The notes below the pieces were generated by a model. The model saw only the letters and a list, made by a program, of their open reading frames with translations, was not told the DNA's origin and ran no database searches. From Hyaloraphidium curvatum SAG 235-1 (taxonomy: Eukaryota > Fungi > Monoblepharomycota), in NCBI GenBank assembly GCA_025558095.1, contig JAIVFI010000021.1, forward strand, positions 434,001-498,000: a stretch of 64,000 nt of DNA. Reading direction: 5' to 3'. Shown here one piece after another: positions 9,801 to 27,911 of the stretch (the first letter of the stretch is position 1; each line of letters begins with the position of its first letter). The position numbers were made by a program, and so were the translations under genes.

Positions 9801-11882
9801 CGATAGACGGGCTGGAGGCGGCGGGGTCCAACTTTCGGCGGGAGCAAAGTTGAGCAAAGTTGGGGGGGACCCCTGCCTCCACACGTTCTCCTAACGACCG
9901 TTTACAACGGGGCAGCTTTCTCATCTTCAGCCGTTGGGCTGACCGATGCCTTCCGCGTCGGTCCGATTAGGTTGTTGTAGTAGAGCGAGTAGATCAGTTG
10001 CCTCTTGTTTACTACGTCACGTTGTCCAGCGGACCTTTCCCCCGCTTCGCCCTCTTCGACGCCAGTTCCGCGGTCGGCTCAGGCTCAAGCACCTTTGACT
10101 CCGGGCGGCTCGGCACTGACACCTCCTGTGGGCGCAGCTTCTGATTGTTGCCGCGCTTATAGTCCCGCAAGTCGAGATCCTCGTCCGCGACTCCGAGCGA
10201 AGCTGACTGGTTGCCAAAGAGGAAGACGCTGACGGCGTTCTTCACTCCGGCCGATCCTTCATGCGGGGAGAAGCGCAGCCTCTTGCAGATCGGCTTCCTG
10301 GCTGCACACATCCGTGCTCCGAACAGCTTGTCGAACGAGCTCCACAGCGATTTCAGTTCCTCCTCATCGGCAATGCGGACCTGTCCAACGAGGTGGCCGC
10401 GGCCAACGGTCCCCAGCGTCTCCTGGAACAGAGGTCCGTAGTGGCGGTGCGTCCAGGCCGCATCGGCCTCGCCGCGCCCAGCGGCTTCGATGATGAAAAT
10501 CGCGCAGTCCATGGCGGTGAGCGCGCTGCGCACGCTGGCCCTCGAGCCCAGCCTCGCGTCCCTGTCGGCAACGAAGCGACCAAAGATGTCGTTCTCGACC
10601 TTGACCTTGGCCTGGCCATCCACCAAGGGCAGGAAGTCCACGCCCTCGGTGATCTTCTTCGCATTAGCGCCAACGCCTCCGGCGAGCGGGCACTGAGCTT
10701 CGGGTGGACGCATCCCCCGAATCGGCCGCCCTCGGCATGCTGCAGCACCAGCGAGAACTCCATGCGACAACGGATGCAGTAGCACAAAATCGCGTCGTCC
10801 CGCTTCGATATGGTGCGGCGGTAGATGACGAAGGCCGGCAGCGCCGCGGCGAGCAGGTCCTTGAAGTCGTCCTGCAAAAGGACGCGGAGCTCGTCGCGGG
10901 TCCGAGTTGGAACCGCCCCCAGGCGCATCGCCACTTTGATGATGGCGATGTGGATCTTGCGCACTTCTTCCTCGCCCTTGTCATCGCGCGCGATTGCGAG
11001 CTGCTCCACCTGCTCCGCAGCGGTCATGGCGTCAAAGGTTCCGCCAGTGTTGCGGAACGCACAGTAGCGGAGCTTGGTGTGCTCCGCAAGCTGCGCACGG
11101 CGACTGTAGTCTACCCTGCCACCAGCACGATCTTCCGAAAGATTGGACGCCGTATCGCTCTGTGAAGCCAGCTGGAGCCCGACCAGGAACGCCTCTTCCT
11201 CCTCGTCCTCGTCCTCGAACAGCGCGTCGTCCTCCCGCCGCTCGATCCGTCGTCGTCCGCGTCGCTGTGCTCTTCGCCGTTGGCAGCTTCGGCAGCTTCC
11301 GGGGTTGCCACAGCGTAAGCTTCGTCCCAGGTCCTCTCCAGCACAGCAAACCCTTCTGGCAGATCCGCAGGCGTGATGGGGCCGGCGGCCATGACACCCT
11401 GCGGCACGACAAAGTCCTCGAACGACAGCGGGCTTGTGAGCTCTGCGAGGAGGACAAAAGCGGCGTGAGGCAATCGGTTTCGCGACGATTCGCGAGCCAA
11501 CCCACCATCGTCGCTTCCTTTCGCAGGGCTACGGTAAGAGTCGCGGCAATCGGGACGCCTCAGATGCGCCGGCCGAGGTCGAGTGAAGCGCTGCCGCGGG
11601 ACAACGCGCTGCAAAGCGTTGAGAGGGGGAGTAAGGGAACGAGCTTGTGCAACTCACTGTACGAACATTCGACGCGGGACCTCGTGTCCGATTTCCCGCG
11701 AGCCGGGACAGGCCAAACACGTGGCTTAGGAACGTGATGTGACGTTCCCGAGGCTGCGGACGGCGAGGAGGGCCGGGATGGGGCGGCCGGGATGCTGACG
11801 CGGCGCGAGGGCGATCGGCGTGTCGCGTTGGCCGTTCCTGTGAGTCCTTCCGTGAGTGCTTCTCCGATTTTGGAGATCCTGC
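9801..11882 (-). repeat. Internally deleted copy 1 of an orphan gene/element (homologous to 19865-23588)
   Basis: 10013-11520 is the reverse complement of ~22020-23570, and 11532-11882 of 20040-20380. 9801-9838 matches 19865-19900 in direct orientation. Contains frameshifts. Confidence 0.85.
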
Positions 11883-13035: not shown

Positions 13036-14347
13036 TAGGGTGCCTGGCACCAAAAAGTTGGGCATGCCCATGGCATGCCCATGGGCACCAATTGCGGATG
13101 CGCTGCCCACCGGGTGCCCAACAGCGAGCCCGTGGAGCGGGCGGGGGAGCCGGTGAAGGACCCGTATCACTTTGCCCACAATGCGGAGCTGATCCAGATC
13201 GTGAGGCCGATTGTGGATGCCCTAGGCCGCCTTGAGCATTCGGACGCGACCCTGGCAGACGTACTGATCGAGTATTCGATGGTTGCTCGGACCTGGCGTG
13301 GTGTCAGTCCCGTTGTGGAGGGTGCCAGGGAAACATTCGCTCTGGCTAAGTTGTCTTTAAATGCCAGAGTCAAGGAGTTTGATCACGCGATCTACCTTGT
13401 TGCTCTCCACCTTTCCCCTGTTCACCGGAAGTTTTCTGTGACTGGGTGCCAGGTCGACGGCAGGGACAAGAAGCGGTGGCTCGAATGGGAGATTGGCAAG
13501 CTGCTGCTTGCTTGGAAGTTCCGACAGGAGGCCAGCTTGTCCGTTCTTGCCCAGCGGGATGACTATTTCTTCGGGCGCAACATGTTCATCGGTATCGACG
13601 GCCAGATTCGGACGGCTAGGGAGTTCTGGGAGACCTGGGGCTTGGGCACTACGGAACTCGTCTTTGTGCGCGAGTTTGCGCTCATGGTGCTTAGCATTGC
13701 GCCGCACAGTGCCGCGACCGAGCGCGTATTTTCCAGTTTGGGCCTTGCAAAGACAGACTCGCGGAATCGAATGAATTCCGCAAAGTTGAAGGAAATCGGG
13801 CTGGTCAAGAGCGCATTGAAGCAGGAGATGAAGACCCTAAAGCCAAGGGTGCAATCTGCCGACGAGAAGCCCTGGAGAACCGAGGGAACCGATGACAACC
13901 TTGCCGACGTCCTGGATTCCTTGACCTTGGGCTCGGGAGCTCCTATCCGGGCCTTGGACCCGGAAAACGAGCAGCACCGAGATATTTTCCACGCACTTTG
14001 GCCTCGCATTGATGCGGAGGAGGAGGAGTTCGAGGTGGGATTTGGGACAACCTCCGTCTTCCGCGCCGCGACAGGGCCCTCTGTCTTGGAGAGTTTCCTC
14101 GACATAAATCAACTGCGCACTGCTGAGGAAGCCCAATTGGCTGCTGCTCAACCGCTGCGGGCTTTTGTTGAGGAGGGGGAGGCACAGATAAGCTTGGAAG
14201 CACTCTTAGCGCAGCATCGTGCACGTTCCTAATAGACTCTCTTCTACAAGTACATGATGGGCATGCCCATATAGTGCCCATGGGCACCGGATCAGGTGAT
14301 GGGCATGCCCGTGGGCACGGTATTTTTTGAGCGTGCCAGGCACCCTA
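13036..14347 (+). mobile_element. Non-autonomous hAT DNA transposon retaining the C-terminal transposase/dimerization region
   Basis: 15-bp TIR TAGGGTGCCTGGCAC (13036-13050) / GTGCCAGGCACCCTA (14333-14347); 8-bp TSD GCGCCAAG (13028-13035, 14348-14355); subterminal GGGCATGCCC palindromes. ORF 13075-14232 has the hATC motif LSIAPHSAATERVFSSLG...RNRMN. Confidence 0.95.
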
Positions 14348-18647: not shown

Positions 18648-19865
18648 GCTCCATCACGGGCGGGAGCAAAATGTAGCTGCGCTGCATCAATGTGAGGAAG
18701 GTGGGATTCGGGCCCACCGCCCCGCTGCGAGCGGCGAGGTGCTGGCCGGGGCGCCCACCACGGGCCGGGAGCACGTAGCTGCTCCATCACGGGCGGGAGC
18801 AAAATGTAGCTGCGCTGCATCAATGTGAGGAAGGTGGGATTCGGGCCCACCGCCCCGCTGCGAGCGGCGAGGTGCTGGCCGGGGCACCCACCACGGGCCG
18901 GGAGCACGTAGCTGCTCCATCACGGGCGGGAGCAAAATGTAGCTGCGCTGCATCGATCTGAGGAAGGTGGGATTCGGGCCCACCGCCCCGCTGCGATCGG
19001 CGAGGCGTTGGCCGGGGCACCCACCACGGGCCGGGAGCATGTAGCTGCTCCATCACGGGCGGGAGCAAAATGTAGCTGCGCTGCATCGATCTGAGGAAGG
19101 TGGGATTCGGGCCCACCGCCCCGCTGCGATCGGCGAGGCGTTGGCCGGGGCACCCACCACGGGCCAGGAGCATGTAGCTGCTCCATCACGGGCGGGAGCA
19201 AAATGTAGCTGCGCTGCATCGATCTGAGGAAGGTGGGATTCGGGCCCACCGCCCCGCTGCGAGCGGCGAGGTGCTGGCCGGGGCACCCACCACGGGCCGG
19301 GAGCACGTAGCTGCTCCATCACGGGCGGGAGCAAAATGTAGCTGCGCTGCATCGATCTGAGGAAGGTGGGATTCGGGCCCACCGCCCCGCTGCGAGCGGC
19401 GAGGTGCTGGCCGGGGCACCCACCACGGGCCGGGAGCACGTAGCTGCTCCATCACGGCCGGGAGCAAAATGTAGCGTCGCTGCATCGATCTGAGGAAGGT
19501 GGGATTCGGGCCCACCGCCCCGCTGCGATCATTCGGGCCCACCGCCCCGCTGCGATCGGCGAGTTGGAGCAAAATGTAGCTGCGCTGCATCAATCTGAGG
19601 AAGGTGGGATTCGGGCTCACCGCCCCGCACGATCGGCGAGGTGCTGGCCGGGGCACCCACCACGGGCCGGGAGCACGTAGCTGCTCCATCACGGCCGGGA
19701 GCAAAATGTGGCGTCGCTGCATCGATCTGAGGAAGGTGGGATTCGGGCCCACCGCCCCGCTGCGATCGGCGAGGTGCTGGCCGGGGCACCCACCACGGGC
19801 CGGGAGCACGTAGCTGCTCCATCACGGGCGGGAGCAAAATGTAGCTGTGCTGCATCGATCTGAGG
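18648..19865 (-). repeat. Tandem array 1 of tRNA-Leu 3'-end-derived units (mostly 133 bp)
   Basis: Core GAGGAAGGTGGGATTCGGG at 18694, 18827, 18960, 19093, 19226, 19359, 19492, 19597 and 19729; truncated core TGAGG at 19861-19865. Confidence 0.95.
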
Positions 19866-20704
19866 CGATAGATGGGCTGGAGGCGGTGGGCGACTTTCGG
19901 ACCAAGCTGTTCCTTCATTAGCCTAGTACACCGATCTCGTTCGTATCGCATATGTGACGACGCTAATTACCTCCTGATAAAGTTGTCCAGCGGACCTCTC
20001 GCCCGCTTTGCCCTCTTCGAGGCCGGTTCCGCGGTCGGAGCAGGATCTCCAAAATCGGAGAAGCACTCACGGAAGGCTTCACAGGAACGGCCAACGCGAC
20101 ACGCCGATCGCCCTCGCGCCGCGTCGGCATCCCGTCCGCCCCATCCCGGCCCTCCTCGCCGTCCGCAGCCTCGGGAACGTCACATGACGTTCCTAAGCCA
20201 CGTGTATGGCCTGTCCCGGCTCGCGGGAAATCGGACACGAGGGGTCACGCGTCGATTTGTCGTACGGTGAGTTGCACAAGCTCGGTCCCCTCTCAAACGC
20301 TTTGCAGCCCGCCCGCGGCACCGCTTCGCTCGCCCTAGGCCGGCGCATCTGAGGCGTCCCTATCGCCGCGACGCTTACCGACCTCCTGGCCACGCGTCCT
20401 CCGCCCCTGCGCGACGCGTTGAACGGCCGCCGCGAGGAGAGGAAGGCGTCAGGGCCCGCGGTCCCGCACCCTCCCGGTAAGGCCACAGCGCGCTGCAGGG
20501 AAGCGGATCTCACCGAGATCGATTGCCAGAGGTTCATTTAGATCGCGGATACGGCCTGCCCATGGACTAGAACGAGGATCTTCCGTCGGACACGGGCTCA
20601 GTGAGTCTGGCCAACTTTAGCACCTTGGCCTCCATTCTGATGTCATCGCAGTTACAGATACCCTACCGTATGTCTCTCGTATATCTCTCGCTATCTCATT
20701 GAGC

Positions 20705-23559
20705 ATGTCGAGTTATTTCATTGAGCACGGAGGCCGGACGGCAGCGCCTCACACGACGGAGCTCCATGCAGGCGCGCTCGAGCTCCTGGTGCGGGCCATG
20801 GAGCCCAAGCTCCGCGCCGCGGGCCTGACTACGGAAATGTGGAAGGTTGGGGCGTCGATTGCCTTGGGGACCGGGCTGCAACGACAGATCGATTTCGCAC
20901 GTGGGACGATCACGCTCGCCGTGGGCCCCGGAGGCGCGCACCTTGCCAGGAAGGCGGATGGAAAGCTCGCATGCTGCAAGAACTTAGGCTACGGGAAGGT
21001 CTTTGCGCCCAACAAAAACGGGCCGTGGGACGAACCCGCCGGTGCCGCACGGCGGCGAGATTGTGCTGTCGGCGGACAAGGACCTGCATCCGTATTTCGG
21101 ACAGGCAAACGATCTGCCGAAGCGGGAGAAGATGGCGCGGCACGGTCGGCAGAGGAAGCTCGGCCCGATACTCCTCCACCTGTGCCTGCGACATGATCTG
21201 CAGCCGTTCGCAAAGGACTGTCTCGAGCATTTCTTCATCACCGTAGGCATGCTCGTCTTCGGGACCAAGATCGCCAACATGGAGCCGTACGCAAGGCTGT
21301 GGTGGGAGGCGCCGCGAGCCTGGAACCCGGACCTGGAGGCGTGGAAGGAGGCCGTGGCACGGCGCGTCGTCATGATCACGAATGCGCCGCCAGTTTGCGA
21401 GTCCGGCAAGAATCCTACTGGACAGCCGTTTCGCATTGGGGCATCGTTGCTGGACTACCGTGCACAGGGCTTCCAGTACTTGCACCAAAAGCTCAGGCTG
21501 GCAGACGTGCTTGCGGCTGATGAACACTGGGATGCGGTCTGCCCTGATCTCAACCGCCTCGATCTCAACGCCAATCAGCTGCACGAGCTGAAGATCCGCG
21601 TTCTGGAGGCAGTCGACAGGGCCGCGCCGGGTGCCACCATTCTCCCGATCACAGGCTTCCGGCCTACGGTGATGATCTCCGTTCCCCCGAGTGAGAACTG
21701 GCCCGGAGGCCCGAGCGCGTTCATTGCACGATCCTGGGCGAGCAGCGTTCTGCTGTTCGAGCACAAGGGCAAGTTCTACTTGGCCTTCTTTGCTCCCGAA
21801 GGGGGTCTGGTTCCGAGGTCCGTCGGCACCCGCAAGGCGGATGCGGACAGCGCATGGACGGAGCTGGCGGACATCATCGGGGAGCTCGCGCTGCTCTCTG
21901 AAGAGCTCGACCGGTCGGGCGTTCGTGCGGGGACGAGAGAGCATGCGGAAAGACTGCGCCAGGTGTACGACGGCCGCGCCCCCGAGCTCATGCAGCGGAT
22001 CGAGAAGCTGGCAGGTCGCCCTGCAAAAGGAAGCGGCGGCGGTGGGTTGGCTTTTGGAATAGTCTTGAAACCGATGGCCTCACGCCGCTTTCGTCCTCCT
22101 TGCAGAACTCACGAGCCCGCTCTCGTACGAGGACTTCGTCGTGCCGCAGGAGGTGCTGAACGCCGGTCCGATCACGCCTTCGGATCTCCCCGAGGAGTTT
22201 GCGCGGCTGGAACGGAGCTGGGAAGAGGCGTACGCGGTTCAGACAACGAAAGCTGCTGCTACCGGCGGTGACGAGCACTGCGACTCGGAATCGGAATGCG
22301 GCGAGGACGACGCGCTGTTCGGAGACGAGGACGAGGAGGAAGAGGCTTTCCTGGTCGGGCTCCAGCTGGCCTCACAAAGCTATGCGGCGTCCAAGCTTTC
22401 GGACGATCGTGCTGGTGGCAGGGTCGACTACAGTCGCCGTGCACAGCTGGCGGAGCACACCAAGCTCCGCTACCGTGCGTTCCGCAACACTGGCGGGACC
22501 TTCGACGCCATGACCGCTGCGGAGCAGGTGGAGCAGCTCGCAGTCGCGCGCGATGAAAAGGGCGAGGAAGAAGTGCGAAAGATCCACATCGCCATCATCG
22601 AAGTGGCCATGCGCCTGGGGGCGGTTCCAACTCGGACCCGCGACGAGCTCCGCAGGCTTTCGCAGGACGACTTCAAGGACCTGCTCGCCGCGGCGCTGCC
22701 GGCCTTCATCATCTACCGCCGCACCATGTCGAAGCGGGACGACGCCATTTTGTGCTACTGCATACGTTGTCGCATGGAGTTCTCGCTGGTGCTGCAGCAT
22801 GCCGAGGGCGGCCGATTCGGGGGATGCGTCCACCCGAAGCTCAAGGGAGGCGAAGCCAAGTGCCCGCTCGCCGGAGGCGTTGGCGCTAATGCGAAGAAAA
22901 TCACCGAGGGCGTGGACTTCCTGCCCTTGGTGGACGGCCAGGCCAAGATCAAGGTGGAGAACGACATCTTTGCTCGCTTCGTTGCCGACAGGGACGCGAG
23001 GCTGGGCTCGAGGGCCAGCGTGCGCAGCGCGCTCACCGCCAAGTTGGACTGCGCGATGTTCATCATCGAAGCCGCTGGGCGCGGCGAGGCCGATGCGGCC
23101 TGGACGCACCGCCACTACGGACCTCTGTTCCAGGAGACGCTGGGAACCGTTGGCCGCGGCAACCTCGTTGGACAGGTCCGCATTGCCGATGAGGAGGAAC
23201 TGAAATCGCTGCGGAGCTCGTTCGACAAGCTGTTCGGAGCACGGATGGGTGCAGCCAGGAAGCCGATCGGGAAGAGGCTGCGCTTCTCCCCGCATGAATG
23301 ATCGGCCGGAGTGAAGAACGCCGTCAGCGTCTTCCTCTTTGGCAACCAGTCAGCTTCGCTCGGAGTCGCGGACGAGGATCTCGACTTTCTGGACTATCGG
23401 CGCACAGTCCTGGCCAACAATCAGCAGCTGCGCCCGCAGGAGGTGCAAGTGCCGAGCCGCGCGGAGCCAAAGGTGCAGGAGCCTGAGCCGACCGTGGAAC
23501 CGGCCTCGAAGAGGGCAAAGCGGGCGAGAGGTCCGCTGGACAACTTTATCAGGAGGTGA
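20705..23559 (+). pseudogene. Copy 2 (longer) of the orphan gene: Cys-x2-Cys motif, acidic tract, basic C-terminus; frameshifts and a premature stop
   Basis: ORF pieces 20705-~21000, 21003-~22040, 22141-23301 and 23311-23559. TGA at 23299 corresponds to GGA in copy 1 (PHEGSAGVKN). No recognisable known domain. Confidence 0.6.
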
Positions 23560-23630
23560 TTAACGTGACGTATGCGATATGAACGAGAATGTTCGGATTG
23601 TGCATGGTTGTATAGATCAATTTGCGGAGC

Positions 23631-23985
23631 TCAAGGGGCACCCGCGATGGCTTCCGACTTGTCCGCAAGCGACTCTACGCCGTTGATGTAGGTGGAGGAG
23701 TCCGCGCCCTGGCCGATGGGGCAGTACAATCCGGCGGGGAAGATGTTCGGCTCCCGCGCGGCCGTCTCCGCCGCGGTCGTCCCGGCGTCGTACACCGAGT
23801 AGCCGCCGAGCACCCGCGTGGTCTGGGCTTGGGTGGTGACGTTTCCGGGGGTCGTTGAGGCCGGCGCGAGGCGGTTCTGGATGGCGAGGGAGTTGGCGGC
23901 GAGCGCGGCCTGCGTCGCGGGGTTGACGGATTGGAGCTTGGCCGTCTCGGTGTTGGCGTTGACGATGTCCATGCCGGCCCTGGGA
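23631..23985 (-). pseudogene. Probable 3' (extracellular loop) remnant of the ABCG gene
   Basis: Same strand and GC3-rich codon style as the ABCG 5' piece; YCPIGQG motif resembles ABCG C-terminal loops. Confidence 0.4.
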
Positions 23986-25130
23986 CAAGGTCAGCGCGCG
24001 TGCTCGAACCGGGACCCCGGATGAAACACACCAGAAAGTTGTGACGGCGACGGCATTGGCCTCCCTTCCACCAAGCAGCGCATGCCTTCGAAGACGGGAT
24101 CGTCCGCCATTCGCTTCACTATATGGGAAAGCAATCCTAAGAACTCGTTTCTGACGGCCTCGGAGCCACGCTCCATGGACGCCTTGATGGCCGGAAGGAG
24201 CACGAACACGACCAAATCGCGGAAGGCGGTGTCGCCCCCCTCTTGGACCGTCTCCGACGCACGATCGACCAGCTTGACCAGACAAAACGCGGCGTTCGTC
24301 CGCATGGAAAACTCCTTCTCGTGCCTCACGCTGGAAACAAGATTGCGGAGCACGGGAATCCATTCCTCGGGAGACAGTTCCCCGTATCTTCGCTCGCTGA
24401 TGTCCGAGAAAGCGGCAAATCGACGGTCAAAGTCGGGCTCCTCCACCTTCCGCGTCGAGAAGGCATTCAAGTCCGCAACGATCGAGGCAACGGCGGCGAG
24501 CCCGGAATCGACGGCGACGAAGGATACAAAGCACTTGTCCAGCGCTGCTCGCCCCGCCTGCGAGTCCATCGACGAAAAACAGCGGGAAACGATCCGGGTA
24601 GCGTTTCGAAGTGAGAAAATCCTGCTCCGTGAGCGCGGCGGGCCCGCGCGAAACGCGCCGTCCATAGAGTCCCAAAGATTTCGGTCTCGCACAGCCTCGA
24701 AAGCCGAGGCAAGCGCCTCGAGATAAGGTCCCAAGCCTCGCCAATCGTGCCTTGGTCAATCCGCATATCTCAAGCCAATCTCGCACAGGTCCAGCATATC
24801 GGATCGCATTCGGCGAGCACCCAGTATGCTTCTCAGAAAATCCAATGCACCGGCCAGAACGAGATCGCGAGCTGCCTCGGACTTGAGAGACCCATCGCGA
24901 GCAACAAAGGCATCGAACAGTTTCCGCAAGCATCCAACAGCACGCGGCAACGAAAGGCGAACGTTCGCCATGCCTCGCAACAGCGAGTACAGCGAGTCCC
25001 AGTGTCCAAGCTCGGCGATAGCTTCGCCGCAGGACTGCAGGACTGTGCCCTCAGCTTAAGCGCATTCAGCAAAGCTGCTCTGCAGTCGAAGGGATCTCAA
25101 CGGGATCCATCGTCCCCAAAGCCCTTGTTC
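23985..25130 (-). pseudogene. UTP20: Internal fragment of UTP20 (U3 snoRNP HEAT-repeat protein)
   Basis: LNAFSTRKVEEPDFDRRFAAFSDI...WIPVLRNL...EFSMRTNAAFCL...RARAL; frameshifted; no start or end (a full gene would be several kb). Confidence 0.75.
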
Positions 25131-25199
25131 GAGTCTTGCACCGAGACCAGGAAGAGGGAAAAGCCGAGGCCAGGAAGAGGCAAAAGCCATCCTCACGAG

Positions 25200-26428
25200 G
25201 TCGAGGGGTTGCTAGGGGTTGCGCCAGTAGCGCATGAGGCAGCGCCAGCCCAGCAGCCGCATTAGTTCCCACCACTGCCTCTCGACAATGTGCCTCACTG
25301 GGCTGTATGTCTGCGACTTCAGCCTGTTGAGCTCGGCGAGGTTCGCGCACGCGAGGGGCGACTTGTCGTAGTAGGTCGCGGCGGCCTGGGTGTTGGCGCT
25401 GATGACGTCGAGGTAGTGTCGATGGGATTCTGCAGCTTCGGCGTCGGGTAGCCCATCGTGCTGAAGTAGGGCTCGGCGGCGGCGACGGGGCCGAAGTAGC
25501 ACGTGCGGCCCTCGGAGAGCAGCATGGTGTTGTCGAAGAGGTTGAAGACGGCCTCGGAAGGCTGGTGGATGACTGGACGTGCGATCCGTTAGGCGTGAGC
25601 TCGGGAAAAGGTGCACGACGGAGCAATTCGAACGCACCAATGACGACGCACACGTTCTCCGACTTGACGTACTTGAGCACGAGCTCCATGGTGCAGCGGG
25701 CGCCAAAGTCGTCCAGACCCCTGTGCAGAGGCGGCGAGGGTCGGCGGCGCGATGGGGCGGAGCGAGGCCTTGCGACTTACGAGGTGGGCTCGTCGAGGAA
25801 GAACATGTGCGGGCGGGCAATCATCTACGCGGCGACTTCGGTGCGCTTCTTCTCGCCCGACCAGAAGCCGCGAATGAGCTCGTCGCCGACGGGCGTGTTC
25901 TGGGCGTTGGTGAGCTCGAGCCCGGCGATGACCTCGTCGACGCGGGCGACGCGCTCCTCGTGGGTCGAGTTGCGGGGCATGCGGCACTCGGCGGCGAACA
26001 TCAGCGTCTCGCGCACGGTCATAGTGGGGATGTGCGCCATCATGGTGGTGCCGCCTCTTGAAGAAGACGTCGGGCTTGGTACCGTTGACGAGGACTTCGC
26101 CGGTGATCTCGCCGAGCGACTTCTGCGACAGGATGTGTGCCGGGGCACCTACGGTCAGCAGCGTGAAATGGCAGGGACGACAACAGACGCACCGAGGAGC
26201 GTGGTCTTCCCCGCGCCCGAAGGCCCGATAATGGCCAGCGATTCTCCGGGCCGGGCAAAGCCGGTGTTGTCGATGAGGGAGTGCACGACCTTGGCGCAGT
26301 TGACATTCTCCCACGTCACGGTGTCTGTGTCCCGAGCGTGCTGGTGAGCGAGGAGTCCGGTGGGCGCAACGGAAATCCGTACAGCCGGCGTGGTCGCTCG
26401 CGGCCGCGGCGCTGGGGTTCGCCTCCAT
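25200..26428 (-). pseudogene. ABCG (White-type) transporter pseudogene, NBD region
   Basis: Walker A AIIGPSGAGKTTLL, TVRETLMFAAECR, degenerate signature RGFWSGEKKR followed by an in-frame stop, FLDEPT, IHQPSEAVFNLFD; several frameshifts. Confidence 0.85.
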
Positions 26429-26572
26429 GTCTGAATGTGCGGCGCAAGTTCCGGGAGAGAACCACAGCGACGGCTATACCGCTACGAGGGGAAAACCCGG
26501 CGAGGATTTCTACAGCTTACTTGTCCCTAAGGACACATCGAGGCGCTGATGCTACCATACTTCCAAGAGTCA

Positions 26573-27819
26573 CACGGGCGGGAGCAAAATATAGCTGCGC
26601 TGCATCAATCTGAGGAAGGTGGGATTCGCCGCCGCCCCGCACCCGGGCGGGAGCAAAACGTAGCTGGACTGGATCAATATGAGGAAGGTGGGATTCGGGC
26701 CCACCGCCCCGCGCGATCGGGCACCATCACGGGGGGGAGCAAAATGTAGCTGCGCTGCATCAATCTGAGGAAGGTGGGATTCGGGCCCACCGCCCCGCGC
26801 GATCGGGCACCATCACGGGGGGGAGCAAAATGTAGCTGCGCTGCATCAATCTGAGGAAGGTGGGATTCGCCGCCGCCCCGCACCCGGGCGGGAGCAAAAC
26901 GTAGCTGGACTGGATCAATATGAGGAAGGTGGGATTCGGGCCCACCGCCCCGCGCGATCGGGCACCATCACGGGGGGGAGCAAAATGTAGCTGCGCTGCA
27001 TCAATCTGAGGAAGGTGGGATTCGCCGCCGCCCCGCACCCGGGCGGGAGCAAAACGTAGCTGGACTGGATCAATATGAGGAAGGTGGGATTCGGGCCCAC
27101 CGCCCCGCGCGATCGGGCACCATCACGGCCGGGAGCAAAATGTAGCCGCGCTGCATCAATCTGAGGAAGGTGGGATTCGGGCCCACCGCCCCGCGCGATC
27201 GGGCACCATCACGGGGGGGAGCAAAATGTAGCTGCGCTGCATCAATCTGAGGAAGGTGGGATTCGCCGCCGCCCCGCACCCGGGCGGGAGCAAAACGTAG
27301 CTGGACTGGATCAATCTGAGGAAGGTGGGATTCGGGCTCACCGCCCCGCACGATCGGCGAGGTGCTGGCCGGGGCACCCACCACGGGCCGGGAGCACGTA
27401 GCTGCTCCATCACGGCCGGGAGCAAAATGTAGCGTCGCTGCATCGATCTGAGGAAGGTGGGATTCGGGCCCACCGCCCCGCTGCGATCATTCGGGCCCAC
27501 CGCCCCGCTGCGATCGGCGAGTTGGAGCAAAATGTAGCTGCGCTGCATCAATCTGAGGAAGGTGGGATTCGGGCTCACCGCCCCGCACGATCGGCGAGGT
27601 GCTGGCCGGGGCACCCACCACGGGCCGGGAGCACGTAGCTGCTCCATCACGGCCGGGAGCAAAATGTGGCGTCGCTGCATCGATCTGAGGAAGGTGGGAT
27701 TCGGGCCCACCGCCCCGCTGCGATCGGCGAGGTGCTGGCCGGGGCACCCACCACGGGCCGGGAGCACGTAGCTGCTCCATCACGGGCGGGAGCAAAATGT
27801 AGATGCGCTGCATCGATTT
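26573..27819 (-). repeat. Tandem array 2 of tRNA-Leu 3'-end-derived units, immediately downstream of the tRNA
   Basis: 13 cores at 26612, 26681, 26767, 26853, 26922, 27008, 27077, 27163, 27249, 27318, 27450, 27555 and 27687 (spacings 69/86/105/132-134 bp), followed by the real tRNA 3' end at 27821. Confidence 0.95.
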
Positions 27820-27911
27820 TGAGGAAGGTGGGATTCGAACCCACGCCCCTTGCGGGACCAGCGTTTTCGAGAACCTGAAGCTGGCGGAATAGACCGCTAT
27901 CCGACTTCCCC
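27820..27911 (-). tRNA. tRNA-Leu(CAG) with ~10-nt intron
   Basis: GGGGAAG-TC-GGATAGCGGTCTATTCC-G-CCAGC-TTCAGG[TTCTCGAAAA]C-GCTGG-TCCCGCAAGGGGC-GTGGG-TTCGAAT-CCCAC-CTTCCTC-A. All stems pair, long variable arm, A73, T4 run ~22 nt downstream. Confidence 0.9.

Follow-up and report, generated by a model that had tools for sequence, protein, structure and literature searches.

A tRNA gene followed by copies of its own 3' end

We analysed a stretch of 64,000 nucleotides (nt) from the fungus Hyaloraphidium curvatum SAG 235-1 (contig JAIVFI010000021.1, positions 434,001 to 498,000; hereafter the window), in which a tRNA-Leu(CAG) gene is followed by a tandem array of copies of its own 3' end and trailer. 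Rtt109 and GT90 domains agree with a fungal source. The gene lies on the minus strand at 27820-27911, has intact A and B boxes, and anchors the array as its 'unit 0'. It matches the Rfam tRNA model with 43.7 bits (cut-off 29 bits), and a manual cloverleaf parse gave an acceptor stem of 7 bp, a D stem of 3 bp, the anticodon CAG with G37, a variable arm of 13 nt, a T-arm with a consensus B box, and the discriminator A73. The Rfam alignment has a 13-nt insertion in the anticodon loop, and the manual parse, on which the exact placement rests, puts a 10-nt intron at 27865-27874 (minus strand), at the canonical 37/38 site. ARAGORN miscalled the gene as SeC(tca) when introns were disallowed and as Phe(aaa) when they were allowed. 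A tRNA-Leu(AAG) paralogue is 80% identical. Given its cloverleaf, long variable arm, A73, intron site and B box, we predict that the sequence is a functional eukaryotic tRNA-Leu gene, and the Rfam score and the manual parse uphold the identity assigned in the preliminary description of this locus. No partial tRNA matches were found elsewhere in the window.

The array (array 1) occupies 26573-27819 on the minus strand and was detected by Tandem Repeats Finder (TRF) and through matches to a 17-mer made of the 3' strand of the T stem and the acceptor strand. This 17-mer has 23 matches in the window, against 0.21 expected by chance, with 14 in 26611-27836 (the gene plus 13 copies) and nine in 18693-19744. 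The count bears out the 13 downstream copies originally reported. The extent given then, 26573-27911, encloses a real array but omits a sister array at 18648-19865 (array 2). TRF detected periods of 86, 133, 155, 241 and 396 nt, with identities of 91-97%, and the individual units are 132-134, 105, 86 and 69 nt long, with a higher-order repeat of 396 nt. Reading away from the gene, the order is 134 nt (the gene's own trailer), 132, 105 and 132 nt, then 69/86/86/69/86/69/86/86/69 nt and a partial unit. The proximal block (27355-27819, minus strand) consists of the gene trailer followed by the 132-, 105- and 132-nt units (A, A' and A), and is near-identical to the start of array 2. In the distal block (26573-27354, minus strand), unit typing distinguished C units of 69 nt from B units of 86 nt; they follow one another as C B B C B C B B C, with the partial unit after them. 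Four of the five B units and three of the four C units are identical, and the 396-nt period, which TRF found in 2.0 copies at 97% identity, lies in this block, indicating that the distal part of the array expanded recently and in multi-unit steps.

A unit had been described as T-arm, acceptor 3' strand and T-run trailer. Overall this holds, as every unit of array 1 contains a run of four Ts and most retain a 5-bp T-stem hairpin, but 4 of the 13 copies lack the 5' T-stem strand (GGCGGCG) and hence the T-arm hairpin. The 31-mer quoted as the repeat motif occurs exactly in only seven of the 13 copies and the other six differ; GGTGAGCCC is found in two of the 13. No copy keeps the T-loop of the gene: seven have GGTGGGCCCGA, two have GGTGAGCCCGA, and four are without the 5' stem strand. 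A search of the genome (31.9 Mb, 55 contigs) with the tRNA-Leu(CAG) unit returned 24 matches, all within arrays 1 and 2. The array thus has the properties of a minisatellite born at its locus, namely head-to-tail units, an adjacent single-copy source, absence elsewhere and higher-order periodicity.

Similar arrays at other tRNA genes

We examined a sample of 31 tRNA genes, comprising 28 fetched with 2.5 kb on each side after a genome-wide Rfam search, and the three in the window. Seven of the 31 have their own 3' part and trailer copied directly downstream. The preliminary description had treated recurrence at other tRNA genes as the test of its observation, and self-derived arrays do recur. 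The seven are Leu-CAG (units of 69-134 nt; the array studied here), Leu-AAG (260 and 395 nt), Ser-CGA (148 nt, about 21.5 copies at C14:468663-471851), Ile-AAT (134 nt), Arg-CCT (165 nt), Ala-CGC (172 nt) and Leu-TAA (130 nt, diverged). An eighth array, with a unit of 151 nt, belongs to an Ala-AGC-like gene in locus L051. The Leu-AAG array itself was not recovered in a genome search with its 395-nt unit, which probably consists of words too frequent for such a search.

Extra 3'-end copies lie near 12 of the 31 genes, those at L051 belonging to the neighbouring Ala-AGC-like gene. Four genes have other kinds of partial 3' copies: those of Met, Thr-AGT and Lys-CTT are 5'-truncated, inverted and 0.6-1 kb away, and that of Asn is direct and 2.2 kb downstream. 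A mirror form, in which the upstream flank and the 5' half are copied, was identified at 4 of the 31 genes (Arg-CCG, Ser-CGA, Thr-CGT and one called Ala-TGC). These copies end in the anticodon arm or in the intron, and at Arg-CCG there are two in tandem, with a period of 141 nt, directly upstream of the gene.

Background minisatellites are scarce in the sequence covered. In the window and 29 loci (the 28 above and an extra fetched locus, L065, which holds a match to the 5' part of a tRNA-Leu and is not counted among the 31 genes), TRF identified nine arrays with a period of 40 nt or more. Eight of them overlap or directly adjoin tRNA genes, tRNA-like genes or other sequence derived from tRNA, and the ninth is located some 420 nt upstream of a tRNA gene. 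Within the window, the two Leu-CAG arrays are the only ones.

Several further observations concern tRNA-derived sequence elsewhere in the genome. A detached, inverted Ser-CGA satellite of 4.6 units lies 72 kb from the main Ser-CGA array (G000:C14:544278-544958) and ends in the same partial unit. In L065, a solo tRNA-Leu 5' half (L065:2508-2541; G000:C21:665245) ends in the anticodon loop, with a tRNA-Leu(AAG) gene 5 kb downstream, and its upstream flank coincides with the loose end of a contig from sequencing run X1. Five intact B-box motifs (GGTTCGAGTCC) at an exact spacing of 781 nt (G000:C2:1108610-1111744) may represent a tandem array of whole tRNA genes. Among the matches listed for 5S rRNA genes, eight are full-length and dispersed, a count that says nothing about partial copies.

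Breakpoints between the A and B boxes and damage to the B box

In all seven aligned arrays, homology to the gene begins between mature positions 38 and 52, a range that extends from the anticodon stem (3' strand) to the variable region. Copies of the 5' type stop at about positions 28-40 or within the intron. The breakpoints of both types therefore cluster between the A and B boxes.

Each gene was compared with the copy most frequent in its array, and the diverged Leu-TAA array was excluded from the counts. There are 16 differences at positions 44-51, nine at positions 52-58 (the B-box core), one at positions 59-73 and eight in the first 30 nt of the trailer. The B-box core is damaged in every array compared, by at least one lesion each; among these are a C insertion (seen in Ser-CGA as well as in Leu-AAG), a T deletion and a change of TT to CC. 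Against the B-box consensus GGTTCRANYCC, the Leu-CAG copies read GGCCCGA or lack the motif. Pairs of intact B-box motifs 90-200 nt apart were not found anywhere in the genome. In promoters of RNA polymerase III (Pol III), the B box is the binding site of TFIIIC, and the lesions would be expected to abolish that binding. The copies do not qualify as extra TFIIIC (ETC) sites or ex-B boxes, as none contains an intact GGTTCRANYCC.

The position of the breakpoints bears on the possibility that the copies arose through RNA, with a 3' exon or 3' tRNA half plus read-through trailer being reverse-transcribed and its cDNA inserted beside the gene. Copies starting near position 38 begin where the 3' exon starts and where the anticodon loop is cleaved, and the T4 terminators are probably leaky. 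We nevertheless regard this route as very unlikely, given that unit ends do not match T-runs, that A-tails and CCA are absent, that intronless genes share the same pattern, and that the unit is not dispersed in the genome. Furthermore, the mirror 5' arrays contain at least 100 nt of untranscribed upstream flank. A tRNA-derived short interspersed nuclear element or other dispersed element was ruled out, the unit being confined to its locus, without an A box or tail, and with a broken B box.

ARAGORN reported introns of 9-54 nt in 19 of the 31 sampled tRNA genes (loci L037-L064 and the window), a very high load. The intron site coincides with the place where the half-gene breakpoints cluster.

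The second array, the intervening insert and the downstream gene

Array 2 (18648-19865, minus strand) contains nine copies of the same family in 133-nt units, with no tRNA gene in front of it. It opens with the final 4-5 nt of the tRNA (CCTCA). The first ~470 nt past the tRNA end are near-identical in the two arrays, including about 430 nt at 100% (19395-19840), and the shared block includes the odd 105-nt unit. By our own reading, the distal flank of array 2 is still similar to the tail of the 133-nt unit, and is thus probably the ancestral trailer context.

The arrays are separated by a 6.7-kb mosaic (19866-26572), which we resolved by piecewise genome matches and Pfam searches. It contains two rearranged pieces of a multi-copy orphan gene, and two UTP20 fragments copied from contig C5 (93-96% identical; Pfam UTP20_N, E = 2.4e-40) that are nested in a multi-copy gene family. 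None of the four long open reading frames (ORFs) of the orphan-gene part matched a Pfam family at an E value of 0.01 or better. The plus-strand ORF at 22141-23301 shows third-codon-position bias relative to its paralogue at 10021-11532 and had no Atlas match. Near the orphan-gene paralogue at 10021-11882, the ORF at 13075-14232 weakly matches the hAT dimerisation domain and may belong to a hAT-like transposon. We infer that the mosaic is a complex duplication-insertion, of the kind produced by template switching or break repair, with re-entry at the 3' end of the tRNA, rather than a cargo island.

The arrangement of two arrays around this mosaic, with its codon-biased multi-copy orphan gene, might suggest that the arrays are scars of site-specific integration at the anticodon-loop region and that the insert is the cargo. 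In addition, the anticodon arm, where the breakpoints cluster, is a classic sublocation for prokaryotic integrases, and the genome has nine serine-recombinase matches. We consider repeated integration, which the preliminary description had entertained with attachment (att) scars in mind, to be quite unlikely and not supported by the anatomy. No foreign DNA is present in the units, whose trailer is that of the gene itself, the unit does not occur outside the locus, and array 2 starts with the last 4-5 nt of the tRNA rather than with a 3' half. Moreover, neither Pfam nor Atlas linked the ORFs of the insert to a recombinase, the Resolvase (PF00239) matches are found on different contigs or well away from the arrays, and the insert is a patchwork copied from elsewhere, as expected of template switching or break repair. 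A tyrosine integrase was ruled out as the agent, as the genome has no match to Phage_integrase (PF00589). Four of the nine serine-recombinase (Resolvase) matches have identical scores, and a gene of this type in several copies is unusual for a fungal genome; the matches listed are at G000: C9:339269, C22:421710, C4:373085, C34:542991, C46:168839 and C9:539598.

Units this similar, and a block of 430 nt that is 100% identical in arrays 8 kb apart, are hard to assemble. An assembly artefact, whether of the array, its copy number or the duplicated 470-nt block, is most unlikely all the same. Independent contigs from three sequencing runs of two studies (X1-X3) match array 1 exactly at several places, for example at 26383-26621, 26599-26709 and 26995-27105, and thereby reproduce the unit variants and the junction between array end and insert. 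These are short-read contigs of which none spans the array, so the agreement with the assembly is at the level of units and not of copy number. The two arrays also have distinct unique flanks, and arrays of like architecture but different sequence recur at many loci.

Run X1 appears to be RNA-like. It has contigs within array 1, and minus-strand GT..AG intron joints within 25572-26383, of which 26324>26383 and 26122>26193 have CT..AC ends as read on the forward strand. One X1 contig, which matches 26383-26621 (minus strand) with 0 differences, represents the first exon of a downstream minus-strand gene; this exon begins inside the last unit of array 1 and the contig joins the two. Array 1 may therefore supply the promoter or 5' untranslated region of that gene.

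The X1 contigs inside the array and the start of exon 1 in its last unit are what one might expect of a functional element linked to Pol III, in which the units serve as back-up terminators, form a chromatin boundary, or give rise to small RNAs processed from T-arm-like hairpins. The T4 run of each unit, the T-stem hairpin of most, and the 15 nt after the T-loop, which stay almost identical to the gene, would also suit such roles. Other properties of the arrays argue against them. The B box, which is the TFIIIC site required for boundary function, is broken in every tandem copy, making the stacked insulator suggested earlier improbable. The hairpin is gone in 4 of 13 units, and the absence of the 5' acceptor strand leaves no substrate for RNase Z or RNase P. 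Unit lengths and sequences vary freely between loci, the mirror-image 5' arrays contain no terminator, and recent expansion is the better explanation for the identity of units within an array. Overall, we find a functional role of this kind unlikely. Read-through RNAs, also suggested earlier, may exist, given the RNA-like X1 contigs inside the array.

Origin and significance of the arrays

Given the anatomy of the arrays and their recurrence, we conclude that the observation holds and belongs to a pattern that extends through the genome, best filed under tRNA-gene-associated instability and the birth of minisatellites. The best reading of the array is as a minisatellite born at its locus, and not as a mobile element, an insulator, an integration scar or a functional module. 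Both 3' and mirror 5' forms occur, which only a break at the level of DNA inside the tRNA gene explains. An event with one end in the gene also accounts for units that are specific to each locus and for kilobase-scale rearrangements that end at tRNA halves. The idea that the array records recombination at the tRNA gene, raised in the preliminary description, is supported and can be generalised, as the same architecture occurs at other tRNA genes.

With moderate confidence, we favour a mechanism in which a stall or break at the centre of the tRNA gene leads to tandem duplication, followed by unequal exchange and loss of the extra B boxes. The centre of the Pol III-bound gene, from the anticodon arm to the variable region, would be a recurrent breakpoint in this fungus. 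If a fork stalled there, an Okazaki flap went unprocessed or both DNA strands broke, repair would yield a tandem duplication of a segment reaching from mid-gene to 70-400 nt into the flank, leaving one intact gene beside a half-gene with flank. Unequal sister-chromatid exchange or slippage could then expand and homogenise the units, producing higher-order periods and detached secondary arrays. Selection would maintain the first copy, which is the real gene, and copies with a working B box, which would bind TFIIIC, would fail to persist. Most unit lengths are 130-172 nt, comparable in size to a nucleosome or an Okazaki fragment; we mention this only as a lead.

Several points weigh against this duplication mechanism. 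The inverted partial copies of Met, Thr-AGT and Lys-CTT retain their B box, and the differences near the junction could be neutral, reflecting conversion tracts that end at heterology instead of selection on the B box. A protein barrier at the B box predicts breakpoints downstream of it, yet they are seen 10-20 nt upstream. By our reading, at most 3-4 nt are shared at the founding junctions, which are now eroded. Fork stalling or breakage at these tRNA genes is deduced from sequence patterns. Our 31 genes are a small sample of the 281 first-look tRNA candidates. Finally, the pattern is known from one genome, in which Pif1-family helicases are present. Loss of Pif1-family helicases as the cause was ruled out by five PF05970 matches in the genome.

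Alternatively, the centre of the tRNA gene (the anticodon loop or intron site) might be actively cut or recombined by an unrecognised nuclease or integrative system, which we regard as quite improbable. If it existed, such a system would leave half-tRNA direct repeats around kilobase-scale cargo and would seed half-tRNA satellites, and perhaps it would also drive the high load and length variation of tRNA introns (19/31). A dedicated enzyme, if responsible, would represent a new kind of tRNA-gene targeting in eukaryotes.

Sequence footprints of tRNA-gene fragility are rarely visible, and this genome seems to keep them at nucleotide resolution: about one third of the tRNA genes in our sample have copies of their own halves beside them, and the breakpoints concentrate between the A box and the B box. 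The arrays may thus offer a natural system for the study of minisatellite birth at a defined, protein-bound site. As every tandem copy has a dead B box, they may also provide an in-genome readout of selection against ectopic TFIIIC sites. For annotation they call for caution, since half-tRNA repeats mimic att scars and 'genomic islands'.

Comparison with known systems

Our literature searches for nuclear half-tRNA minisatellites found no paper describing them, but several known systems share part of the architecture. Prokaryotic integrases cross over at the anticodon loop or the T-loop of tRNA genes, and the resulting att repeats flank a foreign element that encodes the integrase. The ex-B boxes of Dictyostelium are intact TFIIIC sites. 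Like the arrays described here, both systems duplicate the tRNA 3' part or the B box downstream of the gene. In this fungus, by contrast, no element or integrase was found and the B box is broken in every tandem copy. In Escherichia coli, the tyrT locus has downstream direct repeats of about 178 bp that hold the 3' end of tRNA-Tyr, and so likewise carries direct repeats of a tRNA gene's own 3' end and downstream sequence. It differs in being a single bacterial operon locus with about three copies, which are transcribed and processed into rtT RNA, and it has no internal promoter, so that the question of the B box does not arise.

Tandem partial copies beside a functional gene are also formed by the plastid trnF pseudogene arrays of Solanaceae, Brassicaceae and others (PMC3786074). 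Those units are 32-73 bp long, lie upstream of one gene and mostly lack acceptor strands, whereas the arrays of this fungus are nuclear, occur at many tRNA genes, and have units with the acceptor 3' strand and 70-400 nt of flank.

With respect to mechanism, microhomology-mediated tandem duplication is a source of new tandem repeats, and defects in Okazaki-fragment processing promote it (bioRxiv 10.64898/2026.02.28.708716). There too, a single-copy segment of about 10-500 bp duplicates and then expands. That process is genome-wide, needs only microhomology, and is described with no mention of tRNA, whereas in this fungus one end of the segment is pinned in the middle of a tRNA gene and the founding junctions are eroded.

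In yeasts, tRNA genes act as replication-fork barriers, sites of R-loops and evolutionary breakpoints (PMC7990762). They are likewise Pol III-bound sites of instability at which rearrangement breakpoints coincide with tRNA genes. The yeast evidence consists of fork pausing and synteny breaks, often attributed to nearby Ty or long-terminal-repeat elements. In this fungus, the breakpoints can be placed inside the gene at nucleotide resolution and have left half-gene minisatellites.

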